A stretch of 64,000 nt of DNA, taken from Macrostomum lignano. Taxonomy: Eukaryota. The notes below the pieces were generated by a model, which was given only the letters and a program-made list of their open reading frames with translations, was not told where the DNA came from and made no database searches. The translations under genes were made by a program, and so were the position numbers. Shown here in pieces: positions 536 through 46,355 of this stretch. Location: positions 310,001-374,000 of the forward strand of contig NIVC01000978.1 of assembly GCA_002269645.1 (NCBI GenBank), given 5' to 3'. The number at the start of each line of letters is the position of its first letter. The first letter of the stretch is position 1.

Positions 536-586
<51 letters not shown>

Positions 587-612
587 TTGTCTGTCTTTCT
601 GTTTATCTATAC

Positions 613-647
<35 letters not shown>

Positions 648-686
648 TTATCTATACTGTCTGTATGTCTGTCTGTTTATCTATAC

Positions 687-745
<59 letters not shown>

Positions 746-828
746 TTGTCTGTCTTTCTGTTTATCTATACTGTCTGTCTGTCTGTCTGTCTTTCTGCTT
801 ATCTATACTGTCTGTCTGTCTGTCTGCC

Positions 829-873
<45 letters not shown>

Positions 874-940
874 TTCTGCTTATCTATACTGTCTGTCTGT
901 CTGTCTGCCTGTCTGTCTGTCTGTCTGTCTGTTTATCTAT

Positions 941-971
<31 letters not shown>

Positions 972-1679
972 TTCTATACTGTCTGTCTGCCTGATGCCCA
1001 AATGTCACACTGGTTGCTAATCTCATTGCAGCCCGAGCAACAGCAGCAGCCGCAGGAAACTGCAATTAACAGCAATCCACCCGTAGTTGTTATTGACAAC
1101 AGTGCCAATGACAGAAATAGCAGCAAGAACAAAGGCAATAGCACCAATCGTAGCAACTCAGACAAGCCAGCAGGTTCAGGTAACAACAACAACAACAACA
1201 ACAACAGCAGCAGCAGTAGCAGCATCAGCTCGGATGGCATCAGCTCAGATCCCGACGATGTCCAGGTTGTCCAGAGCTCGCCAAATGCCTCGTCAGCGGT
1301 GGCCGCCAGACCCGGCGCCAGCCGTCGCCCAGTCCTGGACCTGTCGCAGGAGATGCGCGGCCGATTCACCAGCTCCGCCTCCTCAGTCAGGCAGCGCCGG
1401 CCTTGGAACGAGCGCGACTCGTTTCTGCTATACATCGGGCACGCGCGCTACGGATCTGACTGGGTGAACATTCGCAACCGGCTGCTGAGCCACGCCGCTC
1501 GCACCAATGTCCAGATTAAAGATCGCTGGCGCAATATGCTGAATCGCAACATCCCAGGCAGAATCAGCCGCCGCCTGCGGCAATTGGGATTTAGCGATGA
1601 GGACATCCGAGCTGTTGAAATTGAGGACCTGATGGAGCAGCTGCGTTCCGACTTGGATTTGCGCTCCATCTTTCTGTGA
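1..1679 (+). CDS. Telomeric repeat-binding factor-like (telobox Myb) protein, 5'-partial; exons <1-286 and 1032-1679
   Basis: Frame open from nt 2; GTGAGC donor at 287, TTGCAG acceptor ending 1031, both phase 0. C-terminal RRPWNERD..LYIGHARYGSDW..I......RTNVQIKDRWRNM matches the TRF1/TRF2 telobox Myb signature (RT.V.LKDRWR.M). Confidence 0.8.
296..990. repeat. (TCTG)n microsatellite interrupted by TTTATCTATAC units, filling the TRF-like intron
   Basis: Directly visible; source of the spurious VCLS ORFs. Confidence 0.97.
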
Positions 1680-8772: not shown

Positions 8773-9437
8773 TGCAGACAGGCAGGCAGACAGACAGACA
8801 AACAAACAGACAGACAGACAGACAGACAGGCATTAGGACAGACAGGCAGACAGACAGACAGACAGACAGACAGACAGGCAGACAGACAGACAAACAAACA
8901 GACGCGCATTTGCCCTATCGAATGTACTTATCAGATTATTTATTAGCTAAGCTAATCTTTTCAAATTTTTGCAGTGGACGACGACTCGGACTTTCAGTGC
9001 CTGAGCGTCACTCAGCCGCACAGTCAGGACATCAAATGCGTGGTCTGGCATCCACAGTCCGAGGTGAGCATCTGCTTTTTCTGTTTTAGTGTCTGTCTGT
9101 CTCTGTGTCTGTCTGCCTGTCTGTCTGTCTGCCTGCCTGTCTGTCTGTCTGTCTATCTGTCTTAGTTTGTTTGTCTGTCTGTCTGTCTGTCTGTCTATCT
9201 GTCTGTCTGTCTGTCTGCCTGCCTGTCTGTCTGTCTGTCTATCTGTCTTAGTTTGTTTGTCTGTCTGTCTGTCTGTCTGTCTATCTGTCTTAGTTTGTTT
9301 GTCTGTCTGTCTATCTGTCTGTCTGTCTGTCTGCCTGCCTGTCTGTCTGCCTGTCTGTCTGCCTGCCTGCCTGTCTGTCTGTCTGTCTGTCTGCCTGTCT
9401 GTCTATCTGTCTTAGTTTGTCTGTCTGTCTTAGTGTA

Positions 9438-9506
<69 letters not shown>

Positions 9507-11259
9507 CACCTGTCCGCCCCTTTACCGCCAGATCCTGGCCACGGCCAGCTACGATGACACGCTGAAGCTACACCGAGAGGACGGCGACGACTGGTGCAGC
9601 TTCGCCACCCTGTCCGGCCACGAGTCCACGGTGTGGCGGGCGGCCTTCAGCCCGGACGGCAAGCGGCTGGCTTCGTGTAGCGCAGATCGAACTCTGCGCG
9701 TCTGGTCAGCGGCTGGCGCGCCTATGGATGGTCCGACAACCTGGCGGTGCGAGGCAACGCTGACGGGCGGACACGAGCTGCCGATTTTCTCTTGCAGCTG
9801 GTGGGTTCCAGCTACTTTTAGTTTATGGTTATTTCCTGGAAAGAATACTGAATTGGTATCTGTCTGTTCATTCTGTGGGTATCTTTTCTTACGCTGGATA
9901 TCTAGCGTCTATAGGTCTCTGGTCTCTCTGCAGATTTCTACTCTCTTTGCAGGTATCTATTCTCTATGCAAGTGTCTACTGTCTAGCCTCTCCTCGGCTG
10001 TCTACTCCATATCTACAGTTATCTACTCTCTATCTACAGTTATCTACTCCCTATCTACAGTTATCTACTCTCTATCTACAGTTATCTACTCCCTATCTAC
10101 AGTTATCTACTCTCTATCTACAGTTATCTACTCCCTATCTACAGTTATCTACTCTCTATCTACAGTTATCTACTCCCTATCTACAGTTATCTGCTCTCTA
10201 TCTGCAGTTATCTACTCCCTATCTACAGTTATCTACTCTCCATCTACAGTTATCTACTCTCCATCTACAGTTATCTACTCTCCATCTACAGTTATCTACT
10301 TCCTATCTACAGTTATCTACTTCCTATCTACAGTTATCTACTCCCTATCTACAGTTACCTACTCCCTATCTACAGTTATCTACTCTCTATCTACAGTTAT
10401 CTACTCTCCATCTACAGTTATCTACTCTCCATCTACAGTTATCTACTCTCCATCTACAGTTATCTACTTCCTATCTACGGTTATCTACTCTCTATCTACA
10501 GTTATCTACTCCCTATCTACAGTTATCTACTCTCTATCTACAGTTATCTACTCTTTATCTACAGTTATCTACTCCCTATCTACAGTTATCTACTCTCCAT
10601 CTACAGTTATCTACTCTCCATCTACAGTTATCTACTTCCTATCTACAGTTATCTACTCTCCATCTACAGTTATCTACTCTCTATCTACAGTTATCTACTC
10701 TCTATCTACAGTTATCTACTCTCTATCTACAGTTATCTACTCTCTATCTACAGCTATCTACTCTCTATCTACAGTTATCTACTTCCTAGATCTACAGTTA
10801 TCTCCTCTCTATCTACAGTTATCTACTCCCTATCTACAGTTATCTACTCTCTATCTACAGTTATCTACTCCCTATCTACAGTTATCTACTTCCTAGATCT
10901 ACAGTTATCTCCTCTCTATCTACAGTTATCTACTCCCTATCTACAGTTATCTACTCTCTATCTGCAGTTATCTACTCCCTATCTACAGCTATCTCTGCAG
11001 CAACAAACACACTGCTCATTCTCATGCCCCAATCCGCAGGCACCCGTCGCGGGACTGGCTCTTGTCAGCTTCCCAGGACAACTCCATCTGCCTGTGGACA
11101 GCCAACACCGACTCCGGCTGCTGGGATCTCGTCGAACGAGTCGCCGACGCGCACTGCGAAGATGTCAACGATGTGAAATGGCATCCAACAATTGACAACC
11201 TGTTTGTCAGTGTTGGCGACGACTGCCTGGTCAAAGCGTGGACTGTTGACTTTCGCTGA
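8159..11259 (+). CDS. CIAO1: Cytosolic Fe-S assembly WD40 protein CIAO1; exons 8159-8585, 8975-9063, 9532-9800, 11040-11259; initiator ATG not found at the locus
   Basis: [63 protein letters not shown]. Junction phases 1/0/2 are consistent; 1005 nt give 334 aa plus stop. Confidence 0.93.
8680..8901. repeat. (GACA)n microsatellite in CIAO1 intron 1
   Basis: Directly visible. Confidence 0.97.
9090..9506. repeat. (TGTC)n microsatellite in CIAO1 intron 2
   Basis: Directly visible; reverse complement of the intron-1 repeat. Confidence 0.97.
10005..11000. repeat. 21-bp minisatellite (TCTACAGTTATCTACTCYCTA) in CIAO1 intron 3
   Basis: 7-aa periodic spurious ORFs (STVIYSL / YLQLSTL). Confidence 0.96.
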
Positions 11260-17365: not shown

Positions 17366-20300
17366 TTAGGTCTCGGCGGCCAAGTAGCGGCGCAGCTCGG
17401 CATCCTCCTGATCGCGGACAAACTTATCAAACGCCTGCAAGCGTTGATGACGCTGCGGGTCGCTTTGAGTCTCATCATCATCATCAGCCTCCTCAGCTGC
17501 CAGCGCCGCCAGGCCGCTCTGCAATACAGAACAGAAAATATCTGCCTTATTGATGACTAATCGTCATTAAGATTTAAGATTAATCAACTGAGCTCCTCAC
17601 CTGCATGGTTGCATAATTTCTCTGGTAATTAAACACCGCCCACATCAGGTGCCAAACGGAGAAGTCCGGCCACATTGCGTTAACAAAGTGCACGCAGGTG
17701 AACTGGGTCTGCAATTGGATTAACGAAATTGAACTTGAAATTGAGCAGAGCCAGCTCAAAGTCTGAGGTAAACGTGACCCCTGGTTAGATTCCTGGTTCG
17801 GCTTGTATGTGCACGGTCGCCGAAGGCGTTGCGCTGGGTGCCTACAGGTCTTCTACGTAGTTATTTTGCTGTTATCTAAAATTGAGTACTAATGCCGATA
17901 TGTATCGAAAAAAACAATATACACTGAGCATTGTTTCCGAATATGAGAAGTTTGAAGCAGCCATCTTCATTTCATTGACTCCATAGCATACACAAGGGCA
18001 CAAGGCAAACACTCACACAGCAGTGTATACTGTTTAGCAGCCCTGGAATTATTTATCATCAGATATCTACAATGTACTACTACTAGTAAAAATGCTAGTT
18101 CTTTTTATAAATTAACCAGCAGCCATACCTGCCACAGGAGAAAGTCAGACAGTCTGGTTTCGCCAGAGGTTCGTATCAACAGGTCGGGCGGCCCCGGGGA
18201 CAGGTAGGTGCGAGCGCACCGGTCTAGCAGGCGCGGCGTGACGTCATCTGGGAGCAGGAGGCCGGACCGGACAGCCTGGCCTGCCAAGGACACCGCGTGG
18301 GCCATGTCGTCGCGCGAGGTGTACGCGAAGCACACGTTTAGGCGGGCCTTGCTGTGCGAGCTGAGGGCGGCGAGGTGCGGATACGGGGAGGTGATAGCAG
18401 TATTGTTGATGAGTGCCGACTTCTAATTCTGCGCTGAAGTAAACATTGCAGACCTGATTCGTTTGAATTTATCCACTCTATGTGTCATTCTTGAACTGTT
18501 TCAACTGAAGAAACACACAATCTCCCAACCCACAACTTCCCAACCCAGAATGACCACCAACCCACAACCTCCCAAACCAAGATCACCAAACCCAGAATAT
18601 CCTAACTCAATCTCCCAAACGACAAACTTCCAACTCAGAATGACCCCAAGCCACAATCTCCCAACCCAGAGTGACCCCAAGCTACAATCTCTCAACCCAG
18701 AGTGACCCCCAGCTACAATCTCCCAACCCAGAGTGACCCCAAGCTACAATCCCCCAACCCAGAGTGACCCCAAGCCACAATCTCCCAACCCAGAGTGACC
18801 CCAACCCACAATCTCCCAACCCAGAATGACCCCAAGCTACAATCTCCCAACCCAGAATGACCCCAACCCACAATCTCCCAACCCAGAGTGACCCCAAGCT
18901 ACAATCTCCCAACCCAGAGGGACCCCAAGCTACAATCTCCCAACCCAGAATGACCCCAACCCATAATCTCCCAACCCAGAATGACCCCAAGCCACAATCT
19001 CCCAACCCAGAATGACCCCAAGCTACAATCTCCCAACCCAGAGTGACCCCAAGCCACAATCTCCCAACCCAGAGTGACCCTAAGCCACAATCTCCCAACC
19101 CAGAGTGACCCTAAGCCCAATCTCCCAACCCAGAGTGACCCCAAGCCACAATCTCCCAACCCAGAGTGACCCCAAGCCACAATCTCCCAACCCAGAGTGA
19201 CCCTAAGCCACAATCTCCTTACCCAGAAGGACCCCAAGCCACAATCTCCTAACCCAGAGTGACCCCAAGCCACAATCTCCCAACCCAGAGTGACCCCAAG
19301 CTACAATCTCCTAACCCAGAGTGACCCCAAGCTACAATCTCCCAACCCAGAATGACCCCAAGCTACAATCTCCCAACCCAGAGTGACCCCAAGTCACAAT
19401 CTCTTAACCCAGAGAGTGACCCCAAGCTACAATCTCCCAACCCAGAATGACCCCAAGCTACAATCTCCCAACCCAGAATGACCCTAAGCCACAATCTCCT
19501 AACCCAGAAGGACCCCAAGCCACAATCTCCTAACCCAGAGTGACCCCAAGCCACAATCTCCCAACCCAGAGTGACCCCAAGCTACAATCTCTCAACCCAG
19601 AGTGACCCCAAGCTACAATCTCCCAACCCAGAATGACCCCAAGCTACAATCTCCCAACCCAGAGTGACCCCAAGCCACAATCTCCCACCCAGAGTGACCC
19701 CAACCCACAATCTCCCAACCCAGAGTGACCCCAAGCTACAACCTCCCAACCCAGAATGACCCCAAGCTACAATCTCCCAACCCAGAATGACCCCAAGCTA
19801 CAATCTCCCAACCCAGTATGACCCCAAGCTACAATCTCCCAACCTAGAATGACCCCAAGCTACAATCTCCCAACCCAGAATGACCCTAAGCCACAATCTC
19901 CTAACCCAGAAGGACCCCAAGCCACAATCTCCTAACCCAGAGTGACCCCAAGCCACAATCTCCCAACCCAGAGTGACCCCAAGCTACAATCTCCTAACCC
20001 AGAGTGACCCCAAGCTACAATCTCCCAACCCAGAATGACCCCAAGCTGCAATCTCTCAACCCAGAGTGACCCCAAGCTACAATCTCTCAACCCAGAATGA
20101 CCCCAAGCTACAATCTCCCAACCCAGAGTGACCCCAAGCCACAATCTCCCAACCCAGAGTGACCCCAAGCCACAATCTCCCAACCCAGAATGACCCCAAG
20201 CCACAATCTCCCAAACCAGAATGACGCCAGGCCGCAGACCTGGTGGCCTGCATGACCCTGGCTGCAGCGGCCCTCAGATCGGCAGGCAGCAGTTGCAGAT

Positions 20301-20763
20301 TGCCCAGCACCCGGACGCAGACCCCGTAGGCCCGGAGCCGGTCTAACTCCTGCAATAGTCGGTCGAATTTCTGCCTGGCCAGCTGCAAGAGGCCGGCCAC
20401 CTCCTCGGCGCTCCTGTTGAAATTCTCGATGCTAAAAGCGTAGACGGTCACTTCGTTAATGCCCAGGTCGCGGCACCATTCCAGCACTTCGCCAACTTTT
20501 TGAAAGCCGCGCAGATGGCCCTGCGATTTCTGCAGGCCGTGACATCTGGCGAATCGCCTATTGCCGTCCATGATAATGGCCAGGTGGTTCGGCAGGGGTC
20601 CCTGACCCAGCATGGTCATGGACAGGCGCTGCATAGCTGTGTACTGCGCCCCAGTGCGAATCCATTCGTCCTCAGGGATGGCTGCGGAGTCTTGGCTGGT
20701 GTCCTTGGGCGGCTCCGCTGGCACAGGAGAGGGGCCGGCAGTGGGCAATGGTTGGGATTGCAT
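17366..20763 (-). CDS. DHDDS: Dehydrodolichyl diphosphate synthase (cis-prenyltransferase); exons 20763-20240, 18360-18129, 17708-17601, 17518-17366
   Basis: PNHLAIIMDGNRRFAR, VYAFSIENFNRS, LNVCFAYTSR, PDLLIRTSGETRLSDFLLWQ, MWPDFSVW; junction phases 2/0/0. The exact N-terminus is uncertain. Confidence 0.92.
18520..20226. repeat. 31-bp minisatellite, ~55 copies, in DHDDS intron 1 (G-rich on the sense strand)
   Basis: GTGACC at 18671 and 18702; unit AGTGACCCCAAGCTACAATCTCCCAACCCAG. Confidence 0.96.
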
Positions 20764-25377: not shown

Positions 25378-28300
25378 ATGAATCTAAGCAAGCAGACTGG
25401 ATTTGTTACAATCGGACCGGATGATCACGACGAAAATGGTGAGTAATCTAACCTGATTGCCCAACCAATGCAATATTGTTAGATAGTAAACTGGAGCACG
25501 AAAGAGATGATAGACAAGAGATCTGAACTAAGAGGCAGATTGGTCTAAGGAACTGAATCGCATAAAAAGAGAAGGGGAGTGAGAGAAAGGGAGTGAGATG
25601 GAGAGACCGGGAGTGAGATGGAGAGACCGGGAGTGAGATGGAGAGACCGGGAATGAGATGGAGAGACCGGGAGTGAGATGGAGAGAATGGAGTGAGATAA
25701 AGAGAAAGGGGTGAGATGAAGAGAAAAGGAGGGAGATGAGAGAGACAGGGGTGAGATTAGATAAAAAATACAGGGGGTGAGATTAGATGAAAAGACAGGG
25801 GTGAGATGGTGAGAAAGACAGTGAGATGGAGAGAAGGGGAGAGAGAAGGAGAGAGAGGGAGAGAAGGGGGAGAGAGAAGGGGAGAGAGGAAGAGAAGGGG
25901 AGAGAGAAGGGGAGAGAGAAGGAAGAGAGAAGGGGAGAGAGAAGGGGAGAGAGAAGGGGAGAGAGAAGGGGAGAGAGAAGGGGGGAGAGAAGGGGAGAGA
26001 GGAAGAGAAGGGGAGAGAGAAGGGGGAGAGAGAAGGGGAGAGAGGAAGAGAAGGGGAGAGAGAAGGGGAGAGAGAAGGGGAGAGAGAAGGGGAGAGAGAA
26101 GGGGAGAGAGAAGGGGAGAGAGAAGGGGAGAGAGAAGGGGAGAGAGAAGGGGAGAGAGAAGGGGAGAGAGAAGGGGAGAGAGAAGGGGAGAGAGAAGGGG
26201 AGAGAGAAGGGGAGAGAAAAGGGGAGAGAGAAGGGGAGAGAGAAGGGGAGAGAGAAGGGGAGAGAGAAGGGGAGAGAGAAGGGGAGAGAGAAGGGGAGAG
26301 AGAAGGGGAGAGAAGGGGAGAGAGAAGGGGAGAGAGAAGGGGAGAGAGAAGGGGAGAGAAAAGGGGAGAGAGAAGGGGAGAGAGAAGGGGAGAGAGAAGG
26401 GGAGAGAGAAGGGGAGAGAGAAGGGGAGAGAGAAGGGGAGAGAGAAGGGGAGAGAGAAGGGGAGAGAGAAGGGGAGAGAGAAGGGGAGAGAGAAGGGGAG
26501 AGAAAAGGGGAGAGAGAAGGGGAGAGAGAAGGGGAGAGAGAAGGGGAGAGAGAAGGGGAGAGAGAAGGGGAGAGAGAAGGGGAGAGAAAAGGGGAGAGAG
26601 AAGGGGAGAGAGAAGGGGAGAGAGAAGGGGAGAGAGAAGGGGAGAGAGAAGGGGAGAGAGAAGGGGAGAGAGAAGGGGAGAGAAAAGGGGAGAGAAAGGG
26701 GAGAGAGAAGGGGAGAGAGAAGGGAGAGAGAAGGGGAGAGAGAAGGGGAGAGAGAAGGGGAGAGAGAAGGGGAGAGAGAAGGGGAGAGAGAAGGGGAGAG
26801 AGAAGGGGAGAGAAAAGGGGAGAGAGAAGGGGAGAGAGAAGGGGAGAGAGAAGGGGAGAGAGAAGGGAGAGAGAAGGGGAGAGAGAAGGGGAGAGAGAAG
26901 GGGAGAGAGAAGGGGAGAGAGAAGGGGAGAGAGAAGGGGAGAGAGAAGGGGAGAGAAAAGGGGAGAGAGAAGGGGAGAGAGAAGGGGAGAGAGGGAGAGC
27001 AGCTAGATGAGTAAGGATACAAAAGGAAAGAAAAAAGGATTGAGAGATATATGAAAATGATAGTAAAACTGAACTATCTGTAGTTGGGCGTGCCAGAAGA
27101 TCAAGAAACTTAGCTAACACTGAAATTGCACTAATTAGTATGTTTATGGTTGCCTTTCACCGAATTTTAAGTACGTGTAACTGAGGAGGCGCCAACTCAA
27201 GCTACCGAAGCTAGCGATGAAGCTGCTCACGCTCCTGATGAAGGTGGAACCGACGGTCAGATTGCTGCAGAGCAGTCGAACACATCTAGAACTGCTGATG
27301 GTGCCATTTTGAGCTCGTCAACTACTCTCAGTAGATCGGGTATGTTGAAGTTGAGCGCCTCAAAGTGCTAGCTAAAAGTACAAATTTTTATAACTTATTC
27401 ATGGCAACTAGCTTCTAACATTGCCAGCAGGCAGCATTGACGGAGACCTCTCCGAAGGTGAAGCCTTCGTACCCGAGATGACCGAGATGGAGCAGTCCAG
27501 CGCATGGGCGCCCCACAGCAACGAGAAATCTATCAACGAATTGCACGATTATTTCAAAAATTTCTATAGCACAAGACGCATTGTTAAGCAAACTTATCAC
27601 GAGCTCAAGCGGGCTTGTCAGGGCATCCAGGAGCTTCTGATTGGCAGCAGCAGCAACAGCGCTTCGGGACTCTTCGAACTGTCCGCCACGGACCGCGGCA
27701 CAGAGGCTTGGCTGTCGCACAGCGAAGAGCAAACCATCATGAGCGTCCTGCGCACCGACCCAATACTGCTGGTGCTGGGCGGCAAAGGCAGCGGTAAATC
27801 GTCCGTCATCAATGGGATCCTGGGCGCAGATATTTTGCCTAGCAGCGCCGCGATGCTGAAGCATCCGTGCAACGGAATCGTGCATTTGAAATACGATGAA
27901 TCCGGCTACGTTAAAATTGCTAAAAGCACCACCGAGAGGCCTTTGGAGCTGGAACAGATCAAGGGCGACCTGCAACAGCCGGCTCAAATGCTGGTGAGTT
28001 TTCGACTGTGGCTTTTGTGTTAGTGTCTATGGCTTTTGTGGCTGTGTCTATGGCTTTTGTGGCTTTGTCTATGGCTTTTGTGGCTGTGTCTATGGCTTTT
28101 GTGGCTTTTTCTATGGCTTTTGTGGCTGTGTCTATGGCTTTTGTGGCTTTTTCTATGGCTTTTGTGACTGTTTCTATGGCTTTTGTGGCTTTGTCTATGG
28201 CTTTTGTGGCTTTGTCTATGGCTTTGTGGCTGTTTCTATGGCTTTTGTGGCTGTGTCTATGGCTTTTGTGGCTTTGTCTATGGCTTTGTGGCTGTTTCTA

Positions 28301-31300
28301 TGGCTTTTGTGGCTGTGTCTATGGCTTTTGTGGCTGTGTCTATGGCTTTTGTGGCTTTGTCTATGGTTTTTGTGGCTGTGTCTATAGCTTTTGTGGCTGT
28401 GTCTATGGCTTTTGTGGCTTTGTCTATGGCTTTTGATGGCTTTCGTGGCTGCATGTGTCTCTTCTCAAATCTGATATGTTACTTCGAACTAACAATTATT
28501 TAATACTTGCTATCTAAACATTATTACATCTATTTTATCATTTGGACTGTAGCGTCACCGCACATCGAATCAGGTGCGCGAGTTTATTGAGGAAGTGATG
28601 AGCGACGAAGAGCGTGCAGCCTGGGGCAGCCTTGACAACTGTGTGCTGGAGATTGGAGTCAAGAATCCCATATTGAGAACCCGGGTGCAGTTCCTGGAGA
28701 TACCGGGCGACTGTTTTGATCCTAAGCTGCGGGAACGGCTGCTGAGACAGCTGTTCGGATTTAACCACCAGACTGTGGTGTACATCATCGACGGCAATAA
28801 GGGCTTGGGGAACTCGGTGAGTCCGTTTTTTAATGTATTTTCAATTTTTTTAAAGTTCGCAAGAGGGTTGTGGTCACCCTGGCGCAGCCCCTTTTGGCCA
28901 CATCACCGCACAACCGGCGGCTCATTTAAACTGTACAACAGCCCTGACTTTCTCATCGTTAGTCGTGCACACTCTCTGGGCCTTGGAGTTGACTCTCGCG
29001 GTCGTGAGTCGTTTGACAAACGAACCGAGTGACTTTGGTAGAGTCTGACGCATAATCGCTCACTTAATAGTCTTATTTTAACTGATCTGCATACACGAGC
29101 AACAAGTACATGCAAGTTGGTTAATTGGGGTCTTAAGATTTACGTTTATGTTACAGATAAATAAATTAATTGATTGATGACACCTGTCTCAATGGGCTAT
29201 TGCGCGGTGCATCTGAAGGCTGCGTACGGCTGTTCAGTCCAAGTACGGGGGGGGGTCGCCACACACCCTGAATTTATTACCCCTGCTAAAGCTGATACCC
29301 ATTTTTCAGCTGGGTGAACTGAAACAATGCAGAGTTAAGTGTCTTGCTTAAGGACACAAATTGTTCCGAGTTGGGACGGGATTCGAACCCCCGACCTTTC
29401 AGTCGTGAGTCCGACGCTCTTACTGCAAGACTAAAGGCTACAATAGGTTGTTGCTGTTAGCAAAAAAAGCTATAGTTTGCTTCCCTCATTAACCACTGGT
29501 AATACAGACTGCTTTGACTTTCGCCTTCAGTACTCACTGTTGCCAGGGGCGTCTCCATTGGATTTTATGGTGGGGGGACAAAGCCAAGAATTCATGTACA
29601 TGTACATGTACATGACAAAATTCCTACATGTTTATTATTTTGAGAATCAGTGTTGTCAGCGCTCACTTTAGCGCCGCAAGCACTCATTTTGGCGCCGTAG
29701 GCATTCCTTTTGGCGCCGCAAGCACTCATTTTGGCGCCGTAGGCATTCCTTCTAGCGCCACAGGCACTCATTTTGGCTCCGTAGGCATTCCTTCTAGCGC
29801 CACAGACACTCATTTTGGCGCCGCAGGCATTCCTTCTAGCGCCACAGGCACTCATTTTGGCGCCGCAGGCACTCATTTTGGCGCCGCAAGCACTCATTTT
29901 GGCGCCGCAAGCACTCATTTTGGCGCCGCAAGCACTCATTTTGGCGCCGTAGGCATTCCTTCTAGCGCCACAGGCACTCATTTTGGCGCCGTAGGCATTC
30001 CTTCTAGCGCCACAGGCACTCATTTTGGCGCCGTAGGCATTCCTTCTAGCGCCACAGGCACTCATTTTGGCGCCGCAGGCACTCATTTTGGCGCCGCAAG
30101 CACTCATTTTGGCGCCGCAAGCACTCATTTTGGCGCCGCAAGCACTCATTTTGGCGCCGTAGGCATTCCTTCTAGCGCCACAGGCACTCATTTTGGCGCC
30201 GCAAGCACTCATTTTGGCGCCGCAAGCACTCATTTTGGCGCCGTAGGCATTCCTTCTAGCGCCACAGGCACTCATTTTGGCTCCGTAGGCATTCCTTTTA
30301 GCGCCACAGGCACTCATTTTGGCGCCGCAGGCACTCATTTTGGCGCCGCAAGCACTCATTTTGGCGCCGCAAGCACTCATTTTGGCGCCGTAGGCATTCC
30401 TTTTAGCGCCACAGACACTCATTTTGGCGCCGTAGGCATTCCTTTTAGCGCCACAGACACTCATTTTGGCGCCGTAGGCATTCCTTTTGGCGCCACAGGC
30501 ACTCATTTTGGCGCCGCAGGCACTCATTTTAGCGCCACAGACACTCATTTTGGCGCCGCAGGCACTTATTTTGGCGCCGCAAGCACTCATTTTGGCGCCG
30601 CAGGCACTCATTTTGGCGCCGCAAGCACTCATTTTGGCGCCGTAGGCATTCCTTTTAGCGCCACAGGCACTCATTTTGGCGCCGTAGGCATTCCTTTTAG
30701 CGCCACAGGCACTCATTTTGGCGCCGCAGGCACTCATTTTGGCGCCGCAGGCGCTATATTTTGCGCCCTGAAGAAAAAATTATTGATTTCCAAATATTTT
30801 TTCGGCTCGCATGACTTTCAGAATTAGGAAATTTAATTCGCTACCTTGCCAGCCGGGGCTGCTAATCCGGTCTGAATTGTATTGTTCTTGTAGAGTAAAA
30901 CAATTTTATCGGATGGAATATCTATGGAAATTCGCTTCGGTTTAAATCTGCAAGAGGGTCTGACTCTTTGGAAGGTAAACAATATCAGGCTACAACCCAA
31001 TATTGCCTTGAAGAGTATTTATCTAATGACCCCCCGTATTTGATTATTCATAAATCTAACCGTCCGTAATTTTTGAGCATTAAAATCTCCAGAATCTCGA
31101 GAGACATTTTTGTACATTTAAGCTGCTTAGGCAGCGATTAGATTTTTTCGTAGATTTCCAACGTAAGCATTCACTGGTGGCAAATCCATAAATGTGTATG
31201 TCTGGCACCCTCCGCCCACGCAGGATCGCGAGTTTCTCTTCTTTCTCAAAGCCAGTATTCCGGATATTCGCATATTCTTCGTCATCAACAAAGTTGACTA

Positions 31301-33553
31301 CGATCCCGAGGCCGAGGAGATGGACGGCGACTCGGACCTGGAGGACTCGGAGCCGTCGGACTCTCGCTTCCACGACAGCGGCTTGCAGACGCAGCGGAGA
31401 AAGCAGAGACTTGTGGTGGACCAGCTGGCCAAGTACAAGCTGACGGGCGGCAGCGGCAGGCAGACAGTTTATCCCGTGTCCGTGCTGCGCCAGCGCTTCC
31501 CCCTCGATGGCGACTCGGAGCAGATCAGCCAGCTCAACAAAGACTACGAGGCGCAGTACCAGGTGATGGTGGCAGCGCTCAAGGACTGCCTACTGGAGAC
31601 TGGACGAAGTCGGATGGAGCTGGCCCTCTCTACACTCTTCCTGGTGTCCGTGCGCACATTCGACGCCTTCACTCGAGACTCCGGCGCCGAGGCGGAGGAA
31701 GGAGCCCAGCTGGCCGAGCAGGCCTCTAAGGAGCGCATCCTGCAGAGCTTCCGAGACACCAAAACCAAGCTGAAAGAGTGCAAATCGAAATTTCTACAGG
31801 AGCTGACGGATATCCACAAGCGCAGCGAGAAGGCCATTATTGACGAGTGCCGACGACTGGAGTTCGGGCCGCTGCGGTTGTACAGCAGGATCAGGAACAA
31901 CGAGGTTGAGCAGCAATACCGGGAGCAGATTAATAACTACGTGTTGCACCTGCTCAATGTGGAGATTCAAGAGTCGCTTGAAAGACAGATCAACGATCTG
32001 AGGACGGTGCTGTTCAACGAGGTTGAAAAGCTTAAAAAGATGTTCTCGAACGCGTCGAAAGACCAGCCGTCAAGTCCTTGGCAGGATCTAATTCGTACTC
32101 ACGCCGACGAGCTCGTCATGAACATTGTTAAGCTTAATTTTAGCGTCGAATGGAAATCCGAGGCCGGCTTCATCAAATGGGTCAGGAAGCTGTGGACGGC
32201 CGCCACGGTCAACAAGAACAAAGGCGTGAACCCCAACACTCCCGAGTGGAAGAGCGAAGTGGCCAAAGAGTTCTACTCGAGCATCGATCTGAACGCAGTG
32301 GTTCGCCGGATGTTCGCAGGCGTGGACTACACGCTGAAGCAGGCCGAGGCCTGTCTGCTCAACCTGTCCCAGTCGCGGCACAAGTTTGCCGCCAAACTGC
32401 AGAAACTGCTGGCCAAAGAGAGTCCAGCCGCGCGCAGCGTGTGGCTGAGCGTCCAGTTCTGCTTAGTGTCCGCTGAAGCACTTCGAAACGTTCAAGCCTA
32501 CGGCCACCTGCCGTCCGCGAACCTGACGGAGCCAATCGCGTCCACCTGCCTGGGCCAACTTTGCCACTTAACCAGCGGCTACGCCAAATTTGAGCGCACA
32601 CAGGACTCCGGCATTGGCGTCACAGTGACGCAGCTTTGTAGCAGCGCTGGAGGGGGTCCGGACAACTCGGGGATTGGCTCAACGCTTTGCCTCGGCGGCA
32701 TCCCGAATCACCATCTGATGAAGGGCAATGTAGTTAGAAACCAGCGCTGCGTGGCCATCACTCTGATGGTCACGTTCAACGACAAGTTCGAGCTGTGCGT
32801 ACTGCATTCCGCGTACAACAGTTCGCTGCAAGATTTCATCGAGGCTGAGCAGGGCCGGGCGTACACCAAACTGCAAGGCTTTAAAATGATAAAAGATTTG
32901 CTGCAAATCTGGAAACTCTTCGGCCAGGAGACCGCCACTCTGCCCTGGTCGTTGACGCCGAAAAATCTCAAGGTTTGTAGTTTAATTTTTCCTGGAAAGT
33001 CTGCGAGAAGCAGATGCTCAGTCAAGAGTAAACGGTTTACCAGAAAGGTCGTTAGGGCTTTTAGATGTCAGAGTTTCTATTGTCCAACTGTCATATGAAT
33101 TTCTCGTATTGTGTCCCCAAACTCCAGACGTCCCACCGACCTGGCGCATCGATTGTCTACGACTACCTGGAGAGCCCGCTGCCGACCCTGCGGAAGGGCC
33201 ACACATTCGGCGGCCTGCTGTTCACTAAATCCGAGTCCGAGGTTCGCGTCCAAAAGCAGGAAACGGAGTTGAACAACCTGCTGCAGGTGACCTTAATGAT
33301 CCTGGTCCGTAGCCCCGTACAGTTCGAGCCCGACGAACTCGACCGGATCGCCGAGCGTGAGCACCCGCAGGAGCGTCACCGCGAGTTCAAAGCTTACATT
33401 GTGTCGCAGATTAGCGGTCTGAAGCATTCGCGCGAACTCGACCCGATCCCGGCCGACACGATCGCGAACCTCTGGCACACGGCCGCTGAACGCAAAGTCC
33501 GCGACATCGAGGAATGGATCGAGAGGGGAATCAAGAAGTGGCAGAATTGTTGA
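25378..33553 (+). CDS. DSTYK (Dusty)-like protein: dynamin-like P-loop domain, helical region, degenerate kinase domain; exons 25378-25438, 27172-27339, 27428-27993, 28553-28816, 30894-30974, 31224-32972, 33128-33553 (1104 aa)
   Basis: Exons sum to 3315 nt with consistent phases. LVLGGKGSGKSSVIN, FLEIPG, FVINKVD, WKSEVAKEFYSS...HKFAAKLQKL (cf. DSTYK WKRKVAQEAIES...HEAFAASLRQL), LPWSLTPKNL (cf. VHRDIKLKNV). Exons 1, 2 and 5 are less certain. Confidence 0.72.
25570..27000. repeat. Homopurine array in DSTYK-like intron 1: 20-bp units, then (GGGGAGAGAGAA)n 12-mers
   Basis: Directly visible; source of the spurious REGE/SLSP ORFs. Confidence 0.97.
28022..28445. repeat. 21-bp minisatellite GTGTCTATGGCTTTTGTGGCT (intron 3)
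   Basis: 7-aa periodic spurious ORF SMAFVAV. Confidence 0.95.
29160..29440 (-). mobile_element. tRNA-derived SINE with a CORE-like central domain
   Basis: Minus strand: tRNA-like head with GGTTCGAATCCC B-box, then TGTGTCCTTAAGCAAGACACTTAACTCTGCATTGTTTCAGTT...CTGAAAAATGGGTAT, which aligns by eye to the MIR/CORE consensus. Confidence 0.65.
29655..30752. repeat. 21-bp minisatellite with two interspersed unit variants (intron 4)
   Basis: GCACTCATTTTGGCGCCGCAA and GGCATTCCTTCTAGCGCCACA. Confidence 0.96.
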
Positions 33554-38651: not shown

Positions 38652-41600
38652 TCAGGTGCAGAACGCCTTGGACACGGTGCAGGCGTCGCAGACAACTCGA
38701 AACGGTTGCCGCAGCAGCCGGCAAGTCTTCCTCTTGCACTCCGGATGCGTGCCTGGGTAAGTGACCGAGCGAACGCTGTACGGCCTGCCGCAGCACATCA
38801 CGCTGCAGAGAACCTCCCTGCGGTACTGGCTGCTGTCTTCACTTGGCAGGCCCTTCAGCAGGCTCTGACCGACAGGCGTGTTATCTGGGAGGCACTCTCT
38901 GTGACGGGTTAGGCAGTGTGACAATGCTAGATTGTTGAACAAGTTCAACTCAGCCACGTACTAAACAAATGAGCGCGCGGATACGTACGCAGGCACACTC
39001 ACACATGAGTGTACAATGGCCCTAACTTTATATTATCGTTAGGCATGTACACTTCACTGCGCCTTGCGGGGTTGGCTCTCAAGGCCGTTAATTGCACGAG
39101 CAGAGCCAAGCCGAGATTCCAATTCAGCCCCAAATTAATGTGACTGCACTTGGAATCGAGCCTGGGTCGCTGGCACACCAGAGCAGCTGCGCTACCGCTG
39201 GGCTACGGCCCCCTATGTATCAAGGACTACTCAAGTAGAAAGTTTTCAAGCCTGGCGCACCTTCCATGCGTGACGGAGCAGTAATCCAGCGAGTGTTCAT
39301 GAAATAGTAAAAGCGTCTTCTTTGGCAGCCCTTTGACAATCCGGTGACCAATGCATCGGGGACCAAGCGACAGAGGGTTCGTTGGCTGATGGTTACCGAA
39401 AGCGGCGTCCGGACAGAGCTCCTCGTATCCTGCGTAGCCTGAGCGATCGAATATGGCCCTGCGCATCTGGTGCTTGAAGTGAGGGACGAATTTTCGGAGG
39501 TGATTATAGCTGCCATTTCTGATGCAGAGTGACAAGAGCCGCGGATCTCTACAGGCGGATCAGTACAGATGCAGACTGACAAGATCATAAAGCCCCGGAT
39601 CTCTGCATACGGATCAGTACAGATGCAGAGTGACAAGATCATAGAGCCGCGGATCTCTCAGGCGAATCAGTAAATATGCAGACTGACAAGATCACAGAGC
39701 CGGATCTCTGTGCATGCGGATCAGTACAGATGCAGAGTGACAAGATCATAGAGCCCTGGATCTCTGCATGCGGGTCAGTACAGATGCAGACTGACAAGAT
39801 CATAGAGCCCCAGATCTCTGCATGTGGATCAGTACAGATGCAAAGTGACAAGATCATAGAGCCCCAGATCTCTGCATGTGGATCAGTACAGATAGATGTA
39901 GAGTGACAAGATCATAGAGCCGGATCTCTGCATGCGGATCAGTACAGATGCAGAGTGAAAAGATCATAGAGCCCCAGATCTCTGCATGTGGATCAGTACA
40001 GATAGATGTAGAGTGACAAGATCATAGAGCAGGATCTCTGCATGCGGATCAGTACAGATGCAGAGTGACAAGATCATAGAGCCCCGGATCTCTGCATGCG
40101 GATCAGTACAGATAGATGTAGAGTGACAAGATCATAGAGCAGGATCTCTGCATGCGGATCAGTACAGATGCAGAGTGACAAGATCATAGAGCGGGATCTC
40201 TGCATGCGGATCAGTACAGATAGATGTAGAGTGACAAGATCATAGAGCCCCGGATCTCTGCATGCGGATCAGTACAGATAGATGTAGAGTGACAAGATCA
40301 TAGAGCCGGATCTCTGCATATGGGTCAAGTCACAACTCCAAAACCGAAAAAAACTATCACTGTCACTCACCGTGTCATAAATTCGCATCAAAACGTCCAA
40401 AGGATTTTTCCCAGTCCTATGAAACAGACTACCAGCCAGGAGCAGGGGCTTCTCCTGCTGCTGATTCTCCAGCTGCTGCCACCAGGAGCCTCCGACAGCT
40501 CCGTAGTGCAGCACTCGATGACAGGTGCGCACAGAACAGGCTGCACTAGTGCCGTGGCATTTGCACCTCACTGCCTCGGCGTGTCGAGTCGCCCTTATCC
40601 CGACCTGATAGTTGTGACCGTTCACCAGCTCAGTGAACTGCTCGAAGGCTTCCTCTACTGGCACGTCTGTCGATGTTGATGACCAAGAAGGCGTCTTTAA
40701 GCTTCGTTTAAGTCGACCAAGCGACAGGAATTTTCTGGCCAGATGGGTTCCAGCTCGAAGGCTCCTGTCGCAACCGTTGGACTTGAAACTGTCAAGCCGG
40801 AAGCCGGCGGGAAGTTTGGCAGCAAGCCAGCGAGGCGGCGCAACTGCAGTGGCCGCTGAACTCTGCTGACGGCCCCGGCATGAGCACCGGCTGATGCGTC
40901 CTTTGGCGCACTCCCCCGCCATGGTGAGGGTCAGGACGAAGCCGGACAGAGCTCGGACCATGGCGTGCTCCGCTGTCACTGGAAATGCATGAGGCTAATG
41001 TACATATGCATACAACTATGCTTTTGACTCAGCAGCTCAGCGGTAAACTAATCTGGCTCTCTCGGGCTGCGACCCCTGGTTCGATTCAACACGAAAATTG
41101 ACCGATATAGGTTGTCGTTAGATTCACAACCCATTAGGGCCGACCCCCAGGACACAGAGACTGTACATGCCTGACGATTAGAAAGTCAGGGTCGCTGTAC
41201 ACCCTGAGTGAGCGTGTGCATGAGTGCGTGCATCGGTAGGAGTCACCGAAGGCGTTACGTCAGGATGCGCAAATTAATGCGAGCGTATTATTATTAGGTA
41301 CCTAATTAATGCTTCTGTAGTTGAACCGAACTACGAGTAATCTAATATTGCAGGTTGTTCCTCAGCAATGTCTCCAGAAATATTCACGACAAACTATAAA
41401 ATTACCGTTGAAATATTGAACTGTATTTGACAGTTTCAGCAGAACTTACGCGCTTGCAGCTCCGGCGACAGTCGCGGCAGCTGGTGCAGCGAGCTGCAGT
41501 TCCAGCGGCAGTGCCGAAACTGCAGGCCGCACAGAGACACGGTGGCTTTGGCAGCTTCGGTCAGCGCCGCCAGTGCAGCCGGGCTCTGAGCCGATCGCTG

Positions 41601-43686: not shown

Positions 43687-46355
43687 TGTTGTGTATTGCA
43701 AAGGCATGCAATGCGTAGGGATAGTTCGGGGACAGGGTTTCTAGAAACTTCCACAGCAGGACTTGTTTACGCATTGTTCGAGAAGTTTCCTCCCCCGGTC
43801 TTTCTAGAACTTTCCTTCCCCACATGCATAAATATACGAGCCGCCCTCCTATTGGCCAAGCCCTCTTTTGGTGCCACTGAGCGCCCGGATAATTATCTAT
43901 CTTGTTTCTGCGTTCGTTAATTCAACAACAGAACATTGGCGACGAGGATGGCGGCTAGCATCCCCGCACCCACGCCCTTCCTGGCGAACTGCGGATCACC
44001 GACAGTACCATGGAGCCGATGGATTGAGGCCTTTGAATTTTATTACGAGGCGGCCCAATTCAAGGAGCCCGAAGGGAAGGAAGAGGCGAAACCGCTGAAG
44101 AAGAGCCTTCTGCTCCATCTGCTTGGATTCGAAGGTCAGCGGGTTGCTCGAGCACGCCAAGCAATCAAGGAGAACGACACGTTCGCAGCAACTAAGGCGG
44201 AGCTCGAGAAGATCTTCGGCGAGAAGCCCAACGTGATAGTAGCCAGATATCGCTTCCGCCAGCGCCAGCAGCTACCCGGCGAGGACGTCAAGACCTTCGT
44301 GGCAGCCCTGAGGGAGCTGACGGAGCTGTGCAACTACGGCGCGATACAGGACGATCTCATCAGAGACCAGCTGGCTGAGAAGACCAGTAACCCCAGAATC
44401 CGAGAGAGGCTGCTGACGGAGAAGGTGGAGGACCTCAACCTGGCGAAAGCACTCAGCATCGCGGTCTCCATCGAGGAAGCCTCCAAAGAAGCCAAGGCGA
44501 TGGCGCCATCAACCTCGAGCACGGCAGCCGTCCAATCGATCCGACAGCCGAGGGGCCAGAAGGTCGCTGCAAAGGGGAGGCACCGCCCAGCACCAGCTGG
44601 CAGGACGGCCAAACCCGGCGGCGCCTGCACGCGCTGTGGGCGAGACCACGGACCGACGACCCACTGTCCGGCCAAGGGCAAGACATGCGAGGCCTGTGGC
44701 AAGAAGAACCACTTCCGGAGTTGCTGTCGCAGCCAGCAGGCTGCTGTCAATGCCGCGGACGAGGTGATCACAGTCTACGCAGTGCCGGGTGGCGACAGGG
44801 AGGTCCGGGCGACGCTGGAACTCGGACCGGACAGGACCGCTGTCAGCCTGATGGTGGACTGCGGCGCAAGGGTGTCGCTGCTGTCCCGACAGACCGCCGA
44901 CCGGATCTCAGGTGCAGTCACCTCTCCCACTACGACGAAGCTGCGTGCCTACGGCGGACTGCCGATCCAGCTAAGTGGTGTCACCGAGCTGGAGGTGCGC
45001 TACGGCGACAAGGCGATGCAGCACCGGTTCTTCGTTGCGCCAGGCGGCGACAACATCGTCGGTAGAGACCTGATGGAGAAGCTGGGCTTCCGAGTCGACC
45101 TTAGCGGGCAGCCGCTCAGAATCGCGAAAGTCAGCGACTTGACGGCGGACTTGCAGGCGCGGTACCCAACGACCTTCAGCGGTGCGATAGGATGCTGCGC
45201 CGGCGCTGTACACCAGCCCAAGGTCGACCCAGCAGTGCGACCCGTCCAGCAGCCACTCCGCCGCCTGCCCCTCATGCGACAGGAGCAGGTCGGTGCCGAA
45301 CTCGACAAGATGGAGAAGGACGGCATCATCGAGCGAGTTCTCGGACTTCCTGGCCGAGCAGGGCATCCGGCACGTCAAGACCAGCCTCTACCATCCGCAG
45401 ACCAACGGCCAGACGGAGCGTCTCAATCGGTCGCTGCTCGCCAGCATCAGAGCGGCCATGGCGGAGAACAGGCCGTTTCAAGACGCCGTGACCAACTTCT
45501 TGTCTGCCTACCGGAGCTCCAAGCACAGCCTGACGGGCAAGTCACCGGCCGAGCTCATGCTGGGTCGGAAGTGGCGCACCGCGATCACCATGCTGTCTCC
45601 CGGAGGGGGAATGACAACGACCGAGGCGACGCCTCAGGCACTGCGGCAGCAAATCGAGGCGCGGCAGCAGCAGATCAAGGCCTACACCGATGCCAGACGA
45701 AGGGCCCGCCCCGAGACGTTCCACCCCGGCGAGTGGGTGAAAATCCGACGGCCCACCAAGAAGGGCAAACTGGGTACCCGCCTCTCACAGCCACTAGAAG
45801 TGCTCCGCCAGGCGGGACACCACGCGTTCGAGCTCAGCGACGGCACCAGGTGGAACCAGCAGCGGCTGACCCGAACGCCGCACCCGGCACAGCCGAGAGA
45901 GCGGTTCGACCCACTGGTGGACTCGGCGCCAACGACCGGAGCCGGCACGGCGGCACCGGCGGCACCGGCGGCGGAGCCTCCGGCAAGAACAGCAGCGCCC
46001 CGCCGATCTGAGCGAGCCAGGCACCCGCCGATACGCTACATGAACTGCCGCTGGGACCGATCAAAGTGAAGCTTGGGGACTTTTGGACTCCTTGAAGGAG
46101 GGGAAGAATGTTGTGTATTGCAAAGGCATGCAATGCGTAGGGATAGTTCGGGGACAGGGTTTCTAGAAACTTCCACAGCAGGACTTGTTTACGCATTGTT
46201 CGAGAAGTTTCCTCCCCCGGTCTTTCTAGAACTCCTTCCCCGCGTGCATAAATATACTAGCCGCCCTCCTATTGGCCAAGCCCTCTTTTGGTGCCACTGA
46301 GCGCCCGGATAATTATCTATCTTGTTTCTGCGTTCGTTAATTCAACAACAGAACA
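43687..46355 (+). mobile_element. Internally deleted Ty3/Gypsy LTR retrotransposon (2669 bp)
   Basis: LTRs 43687-43935 and 46109-46355 (TG...CA); TSD ATTAC; PBS TGGCGACGAGGATGG 43937-43951 (complementary to the tRNA-Ser(GCU) 3' end); PPT GAAGGAGGGGAAGAA; gag with two CCHC-like knuckles, protease MVDCGA, RT start, integrase C-terminal half. Confidence 0.96.
43948..46011 (+). CDS. Gag-protease-truncated RT fusion ORF of the Gypsy element
   Basis: LLLHLLGFEG, YRFRQRQQLPGEDV, IRDQL, CEACGKKNHFRSCC, PVQQPLRRLP; reads out of frame after ~45338. Confidence 0.85.
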   Translation: MAASIPAPTPFLANCGSPTVPWSRWIEAFEFYYEAAQFKEPEGKEEAKPLKKSLLLHLLGFEGQRVARARQAIKENDTFAATKAELEKIFGEKPNVIVARYRFRQRQQLPGEDVKTFVAALRELTELCNYGAIQDDLIRDQLAEKTSNPRIRERLLTEKVEDLNLAKALSIAVSIEEASKEAKAMAPSTSSTAAVQSIRQPRGQKVAAKGRHRPAPAGRTAKPGGACTRCGRDHGPTTHCPAKGKTCEACGKKNHFRSCCRSQQAAVNAADEVITVYAVPGGDREVRATLELGPDRTAVSLMVDCGARVSLLSRQTADRISGAVTSPTTTKLRAYGGLPIQLSGVTELEVRYGDKAMQHRFFVAPGGDNIVGRDLMEKLGFRVDLSGQPLRIAKVSDLTADLQARYPTTFSGAIGCCAGAVHQPKVDPAVRPVQQPLRRLPLMRQEQVGAELDKMEKDGIIERVLGLPGRAGHPARQDQPLPSADQRPDGASQSVAARQHQSGHGGEQAVSRRRDQLLVCLPELQAQPDGQVTGRAHAGSEVAHRDHHAVSRRGNDNDRGDASGTAAANRGAAAADQGLHRCQTKGPPRDVPPRRVGENPTAHQEGQTGYPPLTATRSAPPGGTPRVRAQRRHQVEPAAADPNAAPGTAERAVRPTGGLGANDRSRHGGTGGTGGGASGKNSSAPPI

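Follow-up and report, generated by a model that had tools for sequence, protein, structure and literature searches.

A strongly diverged DSTYK-like protein of Macrostomum lignano with an altered dynamin-type GTPase domain and a probable dead kinase domain

DSTYK is a human disease gene (urinary-tract malformations, spastic paraplegia SPG23), and in vertebrates its product is an active kinase in which the P-loop and other G motifs are degenerate. The plan of the DSTYK family consists of a GTPase domain and helical bundles resembling those of BDLP and the mitofusins, followed by a C-terminal protein-kinase domain. Two-thirds of DSTYK is outside the kinase domain, yet the literature searched regards it simply as a kinase; no paper found in that literature connects DSTYK with a fold of the dynamin, mitofusin or BDLP type or takes up the invertebrate pseudokinase paralogues, and no DSTYK structure was found in the PDB. 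The gene described here lies in a 64,000-nucleotide window of the genome of the flatworm Macrostomum lignano (assembly GCA_002269645.1, contig NIVC01000978.1, positions 310,001-374,000 of the forward strand); all coordinates below refer to this window and, unless marked (-), to its forward (+) strand. The gene extends from an ATG at 25378 to a stop codon at 33551-33553, in exact agreement with a first-pass annotation of the same DNA, and has six exons, five GT-AG introns and a coding sequence of 3213 nucleotides that specifies 1070 amino acids (the window protein). With moderate confidence, the window protein may be explained as a strongly diverged M. lignano member of the DSTYK/DSTYK-like family that acts as a GTP-binding, hydrolysis-impaired membrane scaffold with a dead kinase domain.

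The closest described systems differ from the window protein in different ways. DSTYK-like proteins of the pseudokinase class (Nematostella XP_032222785/A7RGQ2, Glandiceps XP_077984882, Tubulanus XP_074643235 and Lingula XP_013414054) are the best matches outside Macrostomum (E-values of 1e-26 to 1e-18); they have the same domain order, likewise lack a full HRD or DFG motif, and have two intron positions and phases in common with the window gene. Unlike the window protein, they retain the G2 threonine and the G3 aspartate; most of them keep the catalytic-loop aspartate and the segment PYPDGxxPFH, and Pfam kinase models still recognize some of them, none of which is true of the window protein. 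In addition, the window gene has three further introns at its 5′ end, and its product has a disordered N-terminal tail of about 100 residues. Relatives of the canonical DSTYK type have the same architecture, share two introns, and are homologous in the GTPase region with E-values of 2e-8 to 6e-5, but they possess G1-G3 together with GxGxxG, HRD and DFG, and both of their centres look competent, whereas the kinase of the window protein appears to be dead. Set against vertebrate DSTYK, the window protein appears to be reversed in its kinase and in between in its GTPase motifs. In BDLP (2j68/2j69) and in mitofusins/Fzo1, a GTPase domain is followed by a helical neck and trunk as in the window protein, with approximately 12% sequence identity; BDLP has a hydrophobic paddle and mitofusins have transmembrane segments, whereas the window protein has only a basic tryptophan-rich loop, and BDLP, unlike the window protein, keeps the G2 threonine and the G3 aspartate and has no kinase domain. 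The ROCO family (LRRK1/2, Roc-COR plus kinase) also places a G domain and a kinase in one chain at endolysosomal membranes. In contrast to the window protein, the G domain of LRRK1/2 is a Ras-like Roc domain instead of a dynamin-like one, the domain order and context are different, and no homology between the window protein and LRRK1/2 was detected.

An exhaustive HMMER search over 1.84 billion representative proteins identified 46 homologues, of which 43 contain Dynamin_N and 21 contain both Dynamin_N and Pkinase. The best matches outside Macrostomum are proteins to which NCBI has given the name DSTYK or DSTYK-like; they come from Nematostella, Glandiceps, Ptychodera, Saccoglossus, Branchiostoma, Lingula and Tubulanus, and a Ptychodera fragment among the matches bears the name "bacterial dynamin-like protein". 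Residues 167-774 match a DSTYK-like protein of Glandiceps (E-value 1.2e-26), residues 168-726 match DSTYK of Nematostella (E-value 2.4e-25), and an anchored hidden Markov model (HMM) alignment shows colinear homology to DSTYK-like proteins from residue 107-170 or thereabouts through approximately residue 776, stopping where the kinase domain of the relatives starts. Neither a vertebrate protein nor a protein of another flatworm is among the 46 homologues. On the evidence of these alignments, the link to DSTYK that the first-pass annotation had proposed is supported. A word-indexed homologue search was less informative: the full protein retrieved its own UniRef entry only, the C-terminal 326 residues retrieved nothing, and a 30-sequence family profile retrieved generic kinases and one bacterial dynamin but missed the DSTYK family.

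The GTPase domain is recognized by Pfam as Dynamin_N (PF00350) at residues 191-369 with an E-value of 2.3e-8 and a score of 34.7 bits, compared to a gathering cut-off of 27; this match and the 46 homologues indicate that the gene is not a chance open reading frame. In GTPases of the dynamin superfamily, the P-loop and NKxD motifs give nucleotide binding and guanine specificity, while the switch-I threonine and the G3 aspartate arrange Mg2+ and the gamma-phosphate for hydrolysis. The window protein possesses an intact G1 or P-loop motif GGKGSGKS (27778..27801, residues 194-201) of the form GxxxxGK[ST], the glycine and lysine of which are invariant in 29/29 aligned family members, and an intact G4 guanine-specificity motif NKVD (31287..31298, residues 368-371) of the form [NT]KxD, which is aligned to VNAWD of BDLP. 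The other two motifs are altered. At switch I/G2, HPCNG (27862..27876, residues 222-226) has Asn225 in place of the threonine of the family motif PCT, HPCNGIV being aligned to NPCTAVL of BDLP; at G3, EIPG (28697..28708, residues 307-310) has Glu307 in place of the aspartate of the family motif DxPG, the glycine being retained, and is aligned to VDSPG of BDLP. The loss of the switch-I threonine and of the DxxG aspartate is unambiguous in the alignment to BDLP and 27 relatives. Thus the intact Walker A and NKVD motifs, the EIPG sequence and the missing G2 threonine had all been read correctly in the first-pass annotation, and the "canonical" GTPase that it described is canonical with regard to G1 and G4 but not G2 (T to N) or G3 (D to E). 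Given the roles of these motifs in the superfamily, the alteration of G2 and G3 with retention of the P-loop and NKxD leads one to expect nucleotide binding with weak or no hydrolysis.

The fold of the N-terminal two-thirds of the window protein was predicted by AlphaFold2 with a 30-sequence family alignment and compared to the PDB with Foldseek. The GTPase domain, together with the long stalk of helices that follows it, occupies residues ~105-780 with predicted local distance difference test (pLDDT) values mostly of 80-92, and residues 1-102 are disordered (pLDDT <40). The best structural match is BDLP (2j69) with an E-value of 1.8e-14, 731 aligned columns and a template-modelling (TM) score of 0.53 on the target, followed by IniA, SynDLP, mitofusin 1/2, Fzo1 and OPA1; the N-terminal module is therefore identified as a fusion-type dynamin-like protein. 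The best sequence match in the PDB is likewise a cyanobacterial BDLP (E-value 0.002), with G1, G3 and G4 aligned. The dynamin-like N-terminus claimed previously is supported over residues ~105-780 both by the Dynamin_N score above cut-off and by this fold of BDLP/mitofusin type. The helical bundles (31377..32525, residues ~398-780) are of the neck-and-trunk type of BDLP and mitofusins, as indicated by the long helices of the model and by Foldseek. No segment of transmembrane grade was found when hydrophobicity was scanned across the whole window protein. Between the stalk helices, at roughly the position of the BDLP paddle, there is a basic tryptophan-rich loop, WKSEAGFIKWVRKLWTAATVNKNKG (32151..32225, residues 656-680), that has low pLDDT and a net charge of up to +5 per 18-residue window; its phmmer alignment to the BDLP paddle (domain 2) is non-significant. 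This loop is a candidate peripheral membrane-binding element.

The C-terminal region of the window protein (32526..33550, residues ~781-1070) is delimited as a degenerate kinase domain by its position in the architecture, by the spacing of its motifs and by an intron that serves as an anchor. Introns were mapped in six family genes of four phyla: the canonical and pseudokinase-type genes of Nematostella, the canonical and pseudokinase-type genes of Lingula, the canonical gene of Branchiostoma and the pseudokinase-type gene of Glandiceps. Three introns are characteristic of the family. The first, of phase 0 in the G domain after IDGxxxxxxx|D, could be placed in five genes (the junction in Lingula P0015 was not resolved); the second, of phase 2 in the N-lobe of the kinase, was mapped in all six; and the third, of phase 0 and seven residues past the position of the HRD aspartate, was also mapped in all six, at sites that include HRDIKPENVL|L, HRDVKLQNVL|V, IDPRLTNVK|L and APDLRITNVL|L. 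The N-lobe intron is absent from the window gene. Intron 4 of the window gene (GLGNS|DREFLF, phase 0) corresponds to the G-domain intron, and intron 5 (WSLTPKNLK|TSH, phase 0, seven residues past Ser922) corresponds to the catalytic-loop intron. Intron 5 (32973-33127), which splits the degenerate kinase domain, is the sole intron of the C-terminal domain. The MAFFT alignment in which both coincidences are apparent predates the inspection of the introns. The agreement of intron 5 with the family intron in position and phase anchors the PWS sequence of the window protein to HRD, and therefore the C-terminus is read as a dead kinase domain.

Several features of the C-terminal sequence can be placed relative to this anchor. 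The catalytic-loop remnant LPWSLTPKNLK (32940..32972, residues 919-929) has Pro920, Trp921 and Ser922 at the positions of H, R and D, and retains Asn927 at the fifth position after the aspartate; its LPWSLTPKN portion (residues 919-927) is aligned to the catalytic loop of the relatives. The proposed remnant of DFG is DYL (33161..33169, residues 941-943), in which Asp941 is retained and the glycine is lost; Asp941 is 19 residues past Ser922, compared to a spacing of 18 for the DFG aspartate of canonical members such as Lingula P0040 (HRDIKPENVLLDSEKKAKLADFG). A tentative beta3 strand, read from alignments, is VTVTQL (32619..32636, residues 812-817), with Thr815 at the position of the VAIK lysine; its counterparts in Macrostomum paralogues are ATVTCL and ATVTSL. 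No glycine-rich loop (GxGxxG) was found in the C-terminus when it was looked for in the family alignment. Of the catalytic residues of a kinase, only Asn927 and Asp941 are left. The first-pass annotation had described a dead kinase with no glycine-rich loop and with PWS in place of HRD; its motif readings stand, and its dead kinase is upheld by the conserved position and phase of an intron, not by sequence statistics. Very probably, residues ~781-1070 represent a catalytically dead kinase domain, so degraded that its sequence is no longer recognizable as one.

How unusual the window protein is can be judged from motif counts in 27 aligned relatives outside Macrostomum. The G1 lysine is present in 27/27 of them, the G2 threonine in 24/27 and the G3 aspartate in 25/27, and most have complete G1-G4 motifs. 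The catalytic aspartate of the kinase is found in 19/27, a complete HRD motif in only four (from Branchiostoma, Tubulanus, Ptychodera and Lingula, with G motifs intact as well), and DFG is missing in most. Relatives with an intact GTPase and a degenerate kinase range from sea anemones to amphioxus, and theirs is the commonest state among the invertebrate relatives. Nematostella possesses both a canonical DSTYK (GxGxxG, HRD and DFG with G1-G3) and a separate paralogue of the pseudokinase type, from which it follows that the canonical and pseudokinase classes predate the split between cnidarians and bilaterians. In Lingula anatina (LFEI02000064.1), a pseudokinase-type gene (201603-206655) and a canonical gene (209754-222520) are adjacent, separated by about 3 kb, suggesting an ancient tandem duplication or linkage that has been kept. 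Contrary to the first-pass annotation, a "reversed logic" of intact GTPase and dead kinase is thus not specific to the flatworm lineage. In a crude neighbour-joining tree of invertebrate sequences, the canonical members group together; the Macrostomum pair has a long branch and falls outside this canonical HRD clade, and by distance it is nearest to the pseudokinase class.

Within M. lignano, the paralogues of the window protein are P0002, P0009/P0050/P0051 and P0067. The window protein and three other M. lignano paralogues have conserved blocks at approximately 31% identity, in the C-terminal domain as well, which argues for continued selection. P0002 has glutamine at G2 and VEVPS at G3. P0067 (PAA92483.1), a protein of 1953 residues, contains two complete tandem copies of the same architecture, the second of which has a degenerate P-loop, VTGCSRRLQFGVI; it is probably a product of the merging of two adjoining genes by the gene caller. 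The erosion of G2 and G3 in P0002 and of the second P-loop in P0067 suggests relaxed constraint on catalysis in the Macrostomum clade. Judged by its sequence, the window protein is a derived member of the family (G2 T to N, G3 D to E) and not an ancestral relic: at both motifs it has diverged further than its relatives have, and its Macrostomum paralogues are eroded further, so that the ancestral GTPase state suggested in the first-pass annotation is not upheld. The name "PI3K/PI4K domain-containing" that UniRef gives to P0009/P0050/P0051 was given no weight, as Pfam finds no family there at E <= 10; the name probably derives from a weak profile match to the degenerate kinase-derived region.

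A mechanism can be proposed for the window protein as a scaffold. With G1 and G4 intact and G2 and G3 altered, the protein would bind guanine nucleotide, with little or no hydrolysis. Instead of being a mechanochemical enzyme, it might then serve as a nucleotide-dependent scaffold or tether, kept at membranes by its helical bundles and its basic tryptophan-rich loop, while the former kinase domain would be a docking module. By extrapolation from vertebrate DSTYK, the site of action may be the endolysosomal membranes. Zebrafish Dstyk is required for carriers to fuse with the vacuole of the notochord (PMC7012607), and mammalian DSTYK is located on late endosomes (PMC11933320).

A number of results weigh against this explanation, most of them concerning the kinase origin of the C-terminus. 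A Pfam scan at E <= 10 found no family in the C-terminus of the window protein and its Macrostomum paralogues (four proteins), and a PDB profile search with the C-terminus found nothing relevant, only spurious proteasome matches (E-value 0.11). Alignment of the C-terminus to the family kinase region by hhalign, local and global, gave an E-value of 0.28, and the score of the family kinase HMM on the C-terminus was -2.1 bits, equal to that of shuffles (n=2000). An anchored chimera test was marginal, the real score being reached by 22/1000 and 45/1000 shuffles. AlphaFold2 given the Macrostomum sequences alone produced an unconfident, all-helical model of the C-terminus (pLDDT 33.8). A family-guided model was kinase-like (Foldseek matches to the tyrosine-kinase domains of Abl, Met and FGFR1 with E-values of about 1e-3, TM scores of 0.45-0.50 and pLDDT of 30-60), but this model is biased because its alignment included real kinases. 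As for the N-terminal module, impaired hydrolysis is suggested by two substitutions, and glutamate at times substitutes for aspartate in metal coordination; the protein has no transmembrane segment, and its membrane-binding element is a candidate only. The weakest step is the endolysosomal one, since it presupposes a putative orthology to vertebrate DSTYK. Finally, the gene is known here from its sequence and predicted structure. A global hhalign alignment that included the conserved stalk (E-value 3.8e-5, probability 44%) was not counted as evidence for a kinase.

The alternatives to a hydrolysis-impaired scaffold with a dead kinase concern one module or the other. The window protein could have full GTPase activity of the dynamin-like kind and use it to remodel or fuse membranes, its dead kinase being an appendage for regulation, which would be "reversed logic" in the literal sense. 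The intact G1 and G4, the retained G3 glycine, the complete G1-G4 of most relatives and the confidently modelled BDLP/mitofusin-like architecture are all compatible with such activity, but the switch-I threonine and the G3 aspartate have been replaced at positions conserved in 24-25 of 27 relatives and the Macrostomum paralogues are eroded further (glutamine at G2 and VEVPS in P0002, loss of the P-loop in the second copy of P0067), so that an active GTPase, while not far-fetched, is judged unlikely. If the same P-loop and NKVD were instead taken as marks of a "living fossil" that preserves a GTPase-competent ancestral DSTYK N-terminus, one would have to reckon with relatives from cnidarians, brachiopods, nemerteans, hemichordates and amphioxus that have fuller GTPase motifs, those with canonical HRD and DFG included, and with the long branch of the Macrostomum pair; the motif counts already contradict such a reading, and there is very little probability of it.

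At the other end of the protein, the negative results of the sequence-based tests and the unconfident, all-helical model obtained without kinases would suit a C-terminal domain of 290 residues that is not derived from a kinase but is new or unrelated and has replaced the kinase in the flatworm lineage. Such a replacement would not account for an intron exactly at the position and phase of the catalytic-loop intron of the family, for LxPxN after the aspartate position with an aspartate at +19, for the conserved domain order and length, or for the positive leaning of the anchored-score test, and it is considered improbable. The erosion of both catalytic centres, the presence of several divergent M. 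lignano paralogues and the swelling of introns by minisatellites might also be seen as signs of a functionless duplicate that is decaying into a pseudogene in a recently polyploid, paralogue-rich genome. However, the 3.2-kb reading frame is intact over six exons with canonical splice sites, blocks are conserved among paralogues that are only about 31% identical (the C-terminal domain included), and the GTPase domain and stalk are confidently foldable; decay of this kind is thus highly improbable. A hydrolysis-impaired scaffold with a dead kinase continues to be the explanation that we favour.

The exons of the window gene divide the protein as follows. Exon 1 (25378..25438), with the start codon, encodes residues 1-20 plus one nucleotide of the next codon, part of an acidic disordered N-terminal tail, and ends at a GTGAGT donor (25439). 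Exon 2 (27172..27339), with an AG acceptor and a GTATGT donor, encodes residues 21-77 of the disordered tail and is 100% identical here to UniRef entry A0A1I8GKD9 by tblastn. The dynamin-type GTPase domain is divided among three exons: its first half is in exon 3 (27428..27993, residues 77-265), along with an N-terminal helix, its second part is in exon 4 (28574..28816, residues 266-346), and its end is in exon 5 (31224..32972, residues 347-929). Exon 5 also encodes all of the helical stalk and, as far as the catalytic-loop remnant, the N-lobe derived from the kinase, and exon 6 (33128..33553, residues 930-1070 and the stop codon) encodes the kinase-derived C-lobe. A0A1I8GKD9, an uncharacterised "Dynamin_N domain-containing protein" of M. 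lignano, is 99% identical to the window protein over its full length. Its model has the same exons and N-terminus as the gene described here, and differs by two splice acceptors and a few substitutions. At the first acceptor, a NAGNAG sequence allows 27428 or, as in A0A1I8GKD9, 27431, a shift of three nucleotides; at the second, A0A1I8GKD9 has 28553, which is 21 nucleotides upstream of 28574 and inserts the residues RHRTSNQ into a GTPase-domain loop. This degree of identity and the few substitutions fit allelic or homeologous copies in a paralogue-rich genome. No tandem paralogue of the gene was found within the window, in which it is single-copy.

The window as a whole is eukaryotic DNA with many introns and repeats. 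Three introns of the gene consist largely of minisatellites: a 12-mer repeated ~99 times at 25829-26993, a 21-mer repeated ~21 times at 28009-28441 and a 42-mer repeated ~26 times at 29662-30767. These minisatellites give rise to long spurious repeat open reading frames on both strands. Elsewhere in the window, an open reading frame at 579-1679 (+) contains a Myb DNA-binding domain and another at 9253-10896 (+) contains WD40 repeats. A Prenyltransf reading frame of the cis-prenyltransferase/undecaprenyl-diphosphate-synthase type at 20077-20763 (-) (E-value 9e-34) is probably part of a DHDDS-like gene, and a reading-frame fragment of the Wnt family (PF00110, E-value 2.5e-19) at 40269-40979 (-) is probably one exon of a wnt gene. 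The segment at 43936-46011 (+) has a G+C content of 64%, compared to ~45% around it, and a reading frame of 691 residues with a sub-threshold match to aspartyl protease; it may be a remnant of a retroelement. An MFS_5 reading frame at 54227-54934 (+) (E-value 3e-101) is an exon of an MFSD5-type transporter, and a 486-residue reading frame at 60851-62311 (+) contains a Schlafen AlbA_2 domain (E-value 2e-8).

By itself, the window gene is a modest addition, since UniProt already has its product as an uncharacterised Dynamin_N protein and the family has automatic annotation; the picture of the family is of more interest than the single gene. That picture, of a BDLP/mitofusin-like GTPase whose motifs are intact in invertebrates, of two ancient classes and of repeated loss of one centre, offers a hypothesis for the role of zebrafish Dstyk in vacuole fusion (PMC7012607) and the location of mammalian DSTYK on late endosomes (PMC11933320). 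It is conceivable, although we would not call it probable, that the DSTYK family, the human gene included, arose when a dynamin-like protein of the fusion type became fused to a kinase; that it had separated into two classes, one with both activities and one with the GTPase only, before the cnidarian-bilaterian split; and that the GTPase was lost later in vertebrates, and the kinase and part of the GTPase in Macrostomum. The window gene is one extreme of the divergence series of the family, in an organism that is tractable for RNA interference. If this history is true, the endolysosomal membrane-fusion role of the family would belong to the dynamin-like module, and in the flatworm one would have a natural variant of the protein, "kinase-free, hydrolysis-poor", in which nucleotide binding and scaffolding suffice for whatever function has been retained.

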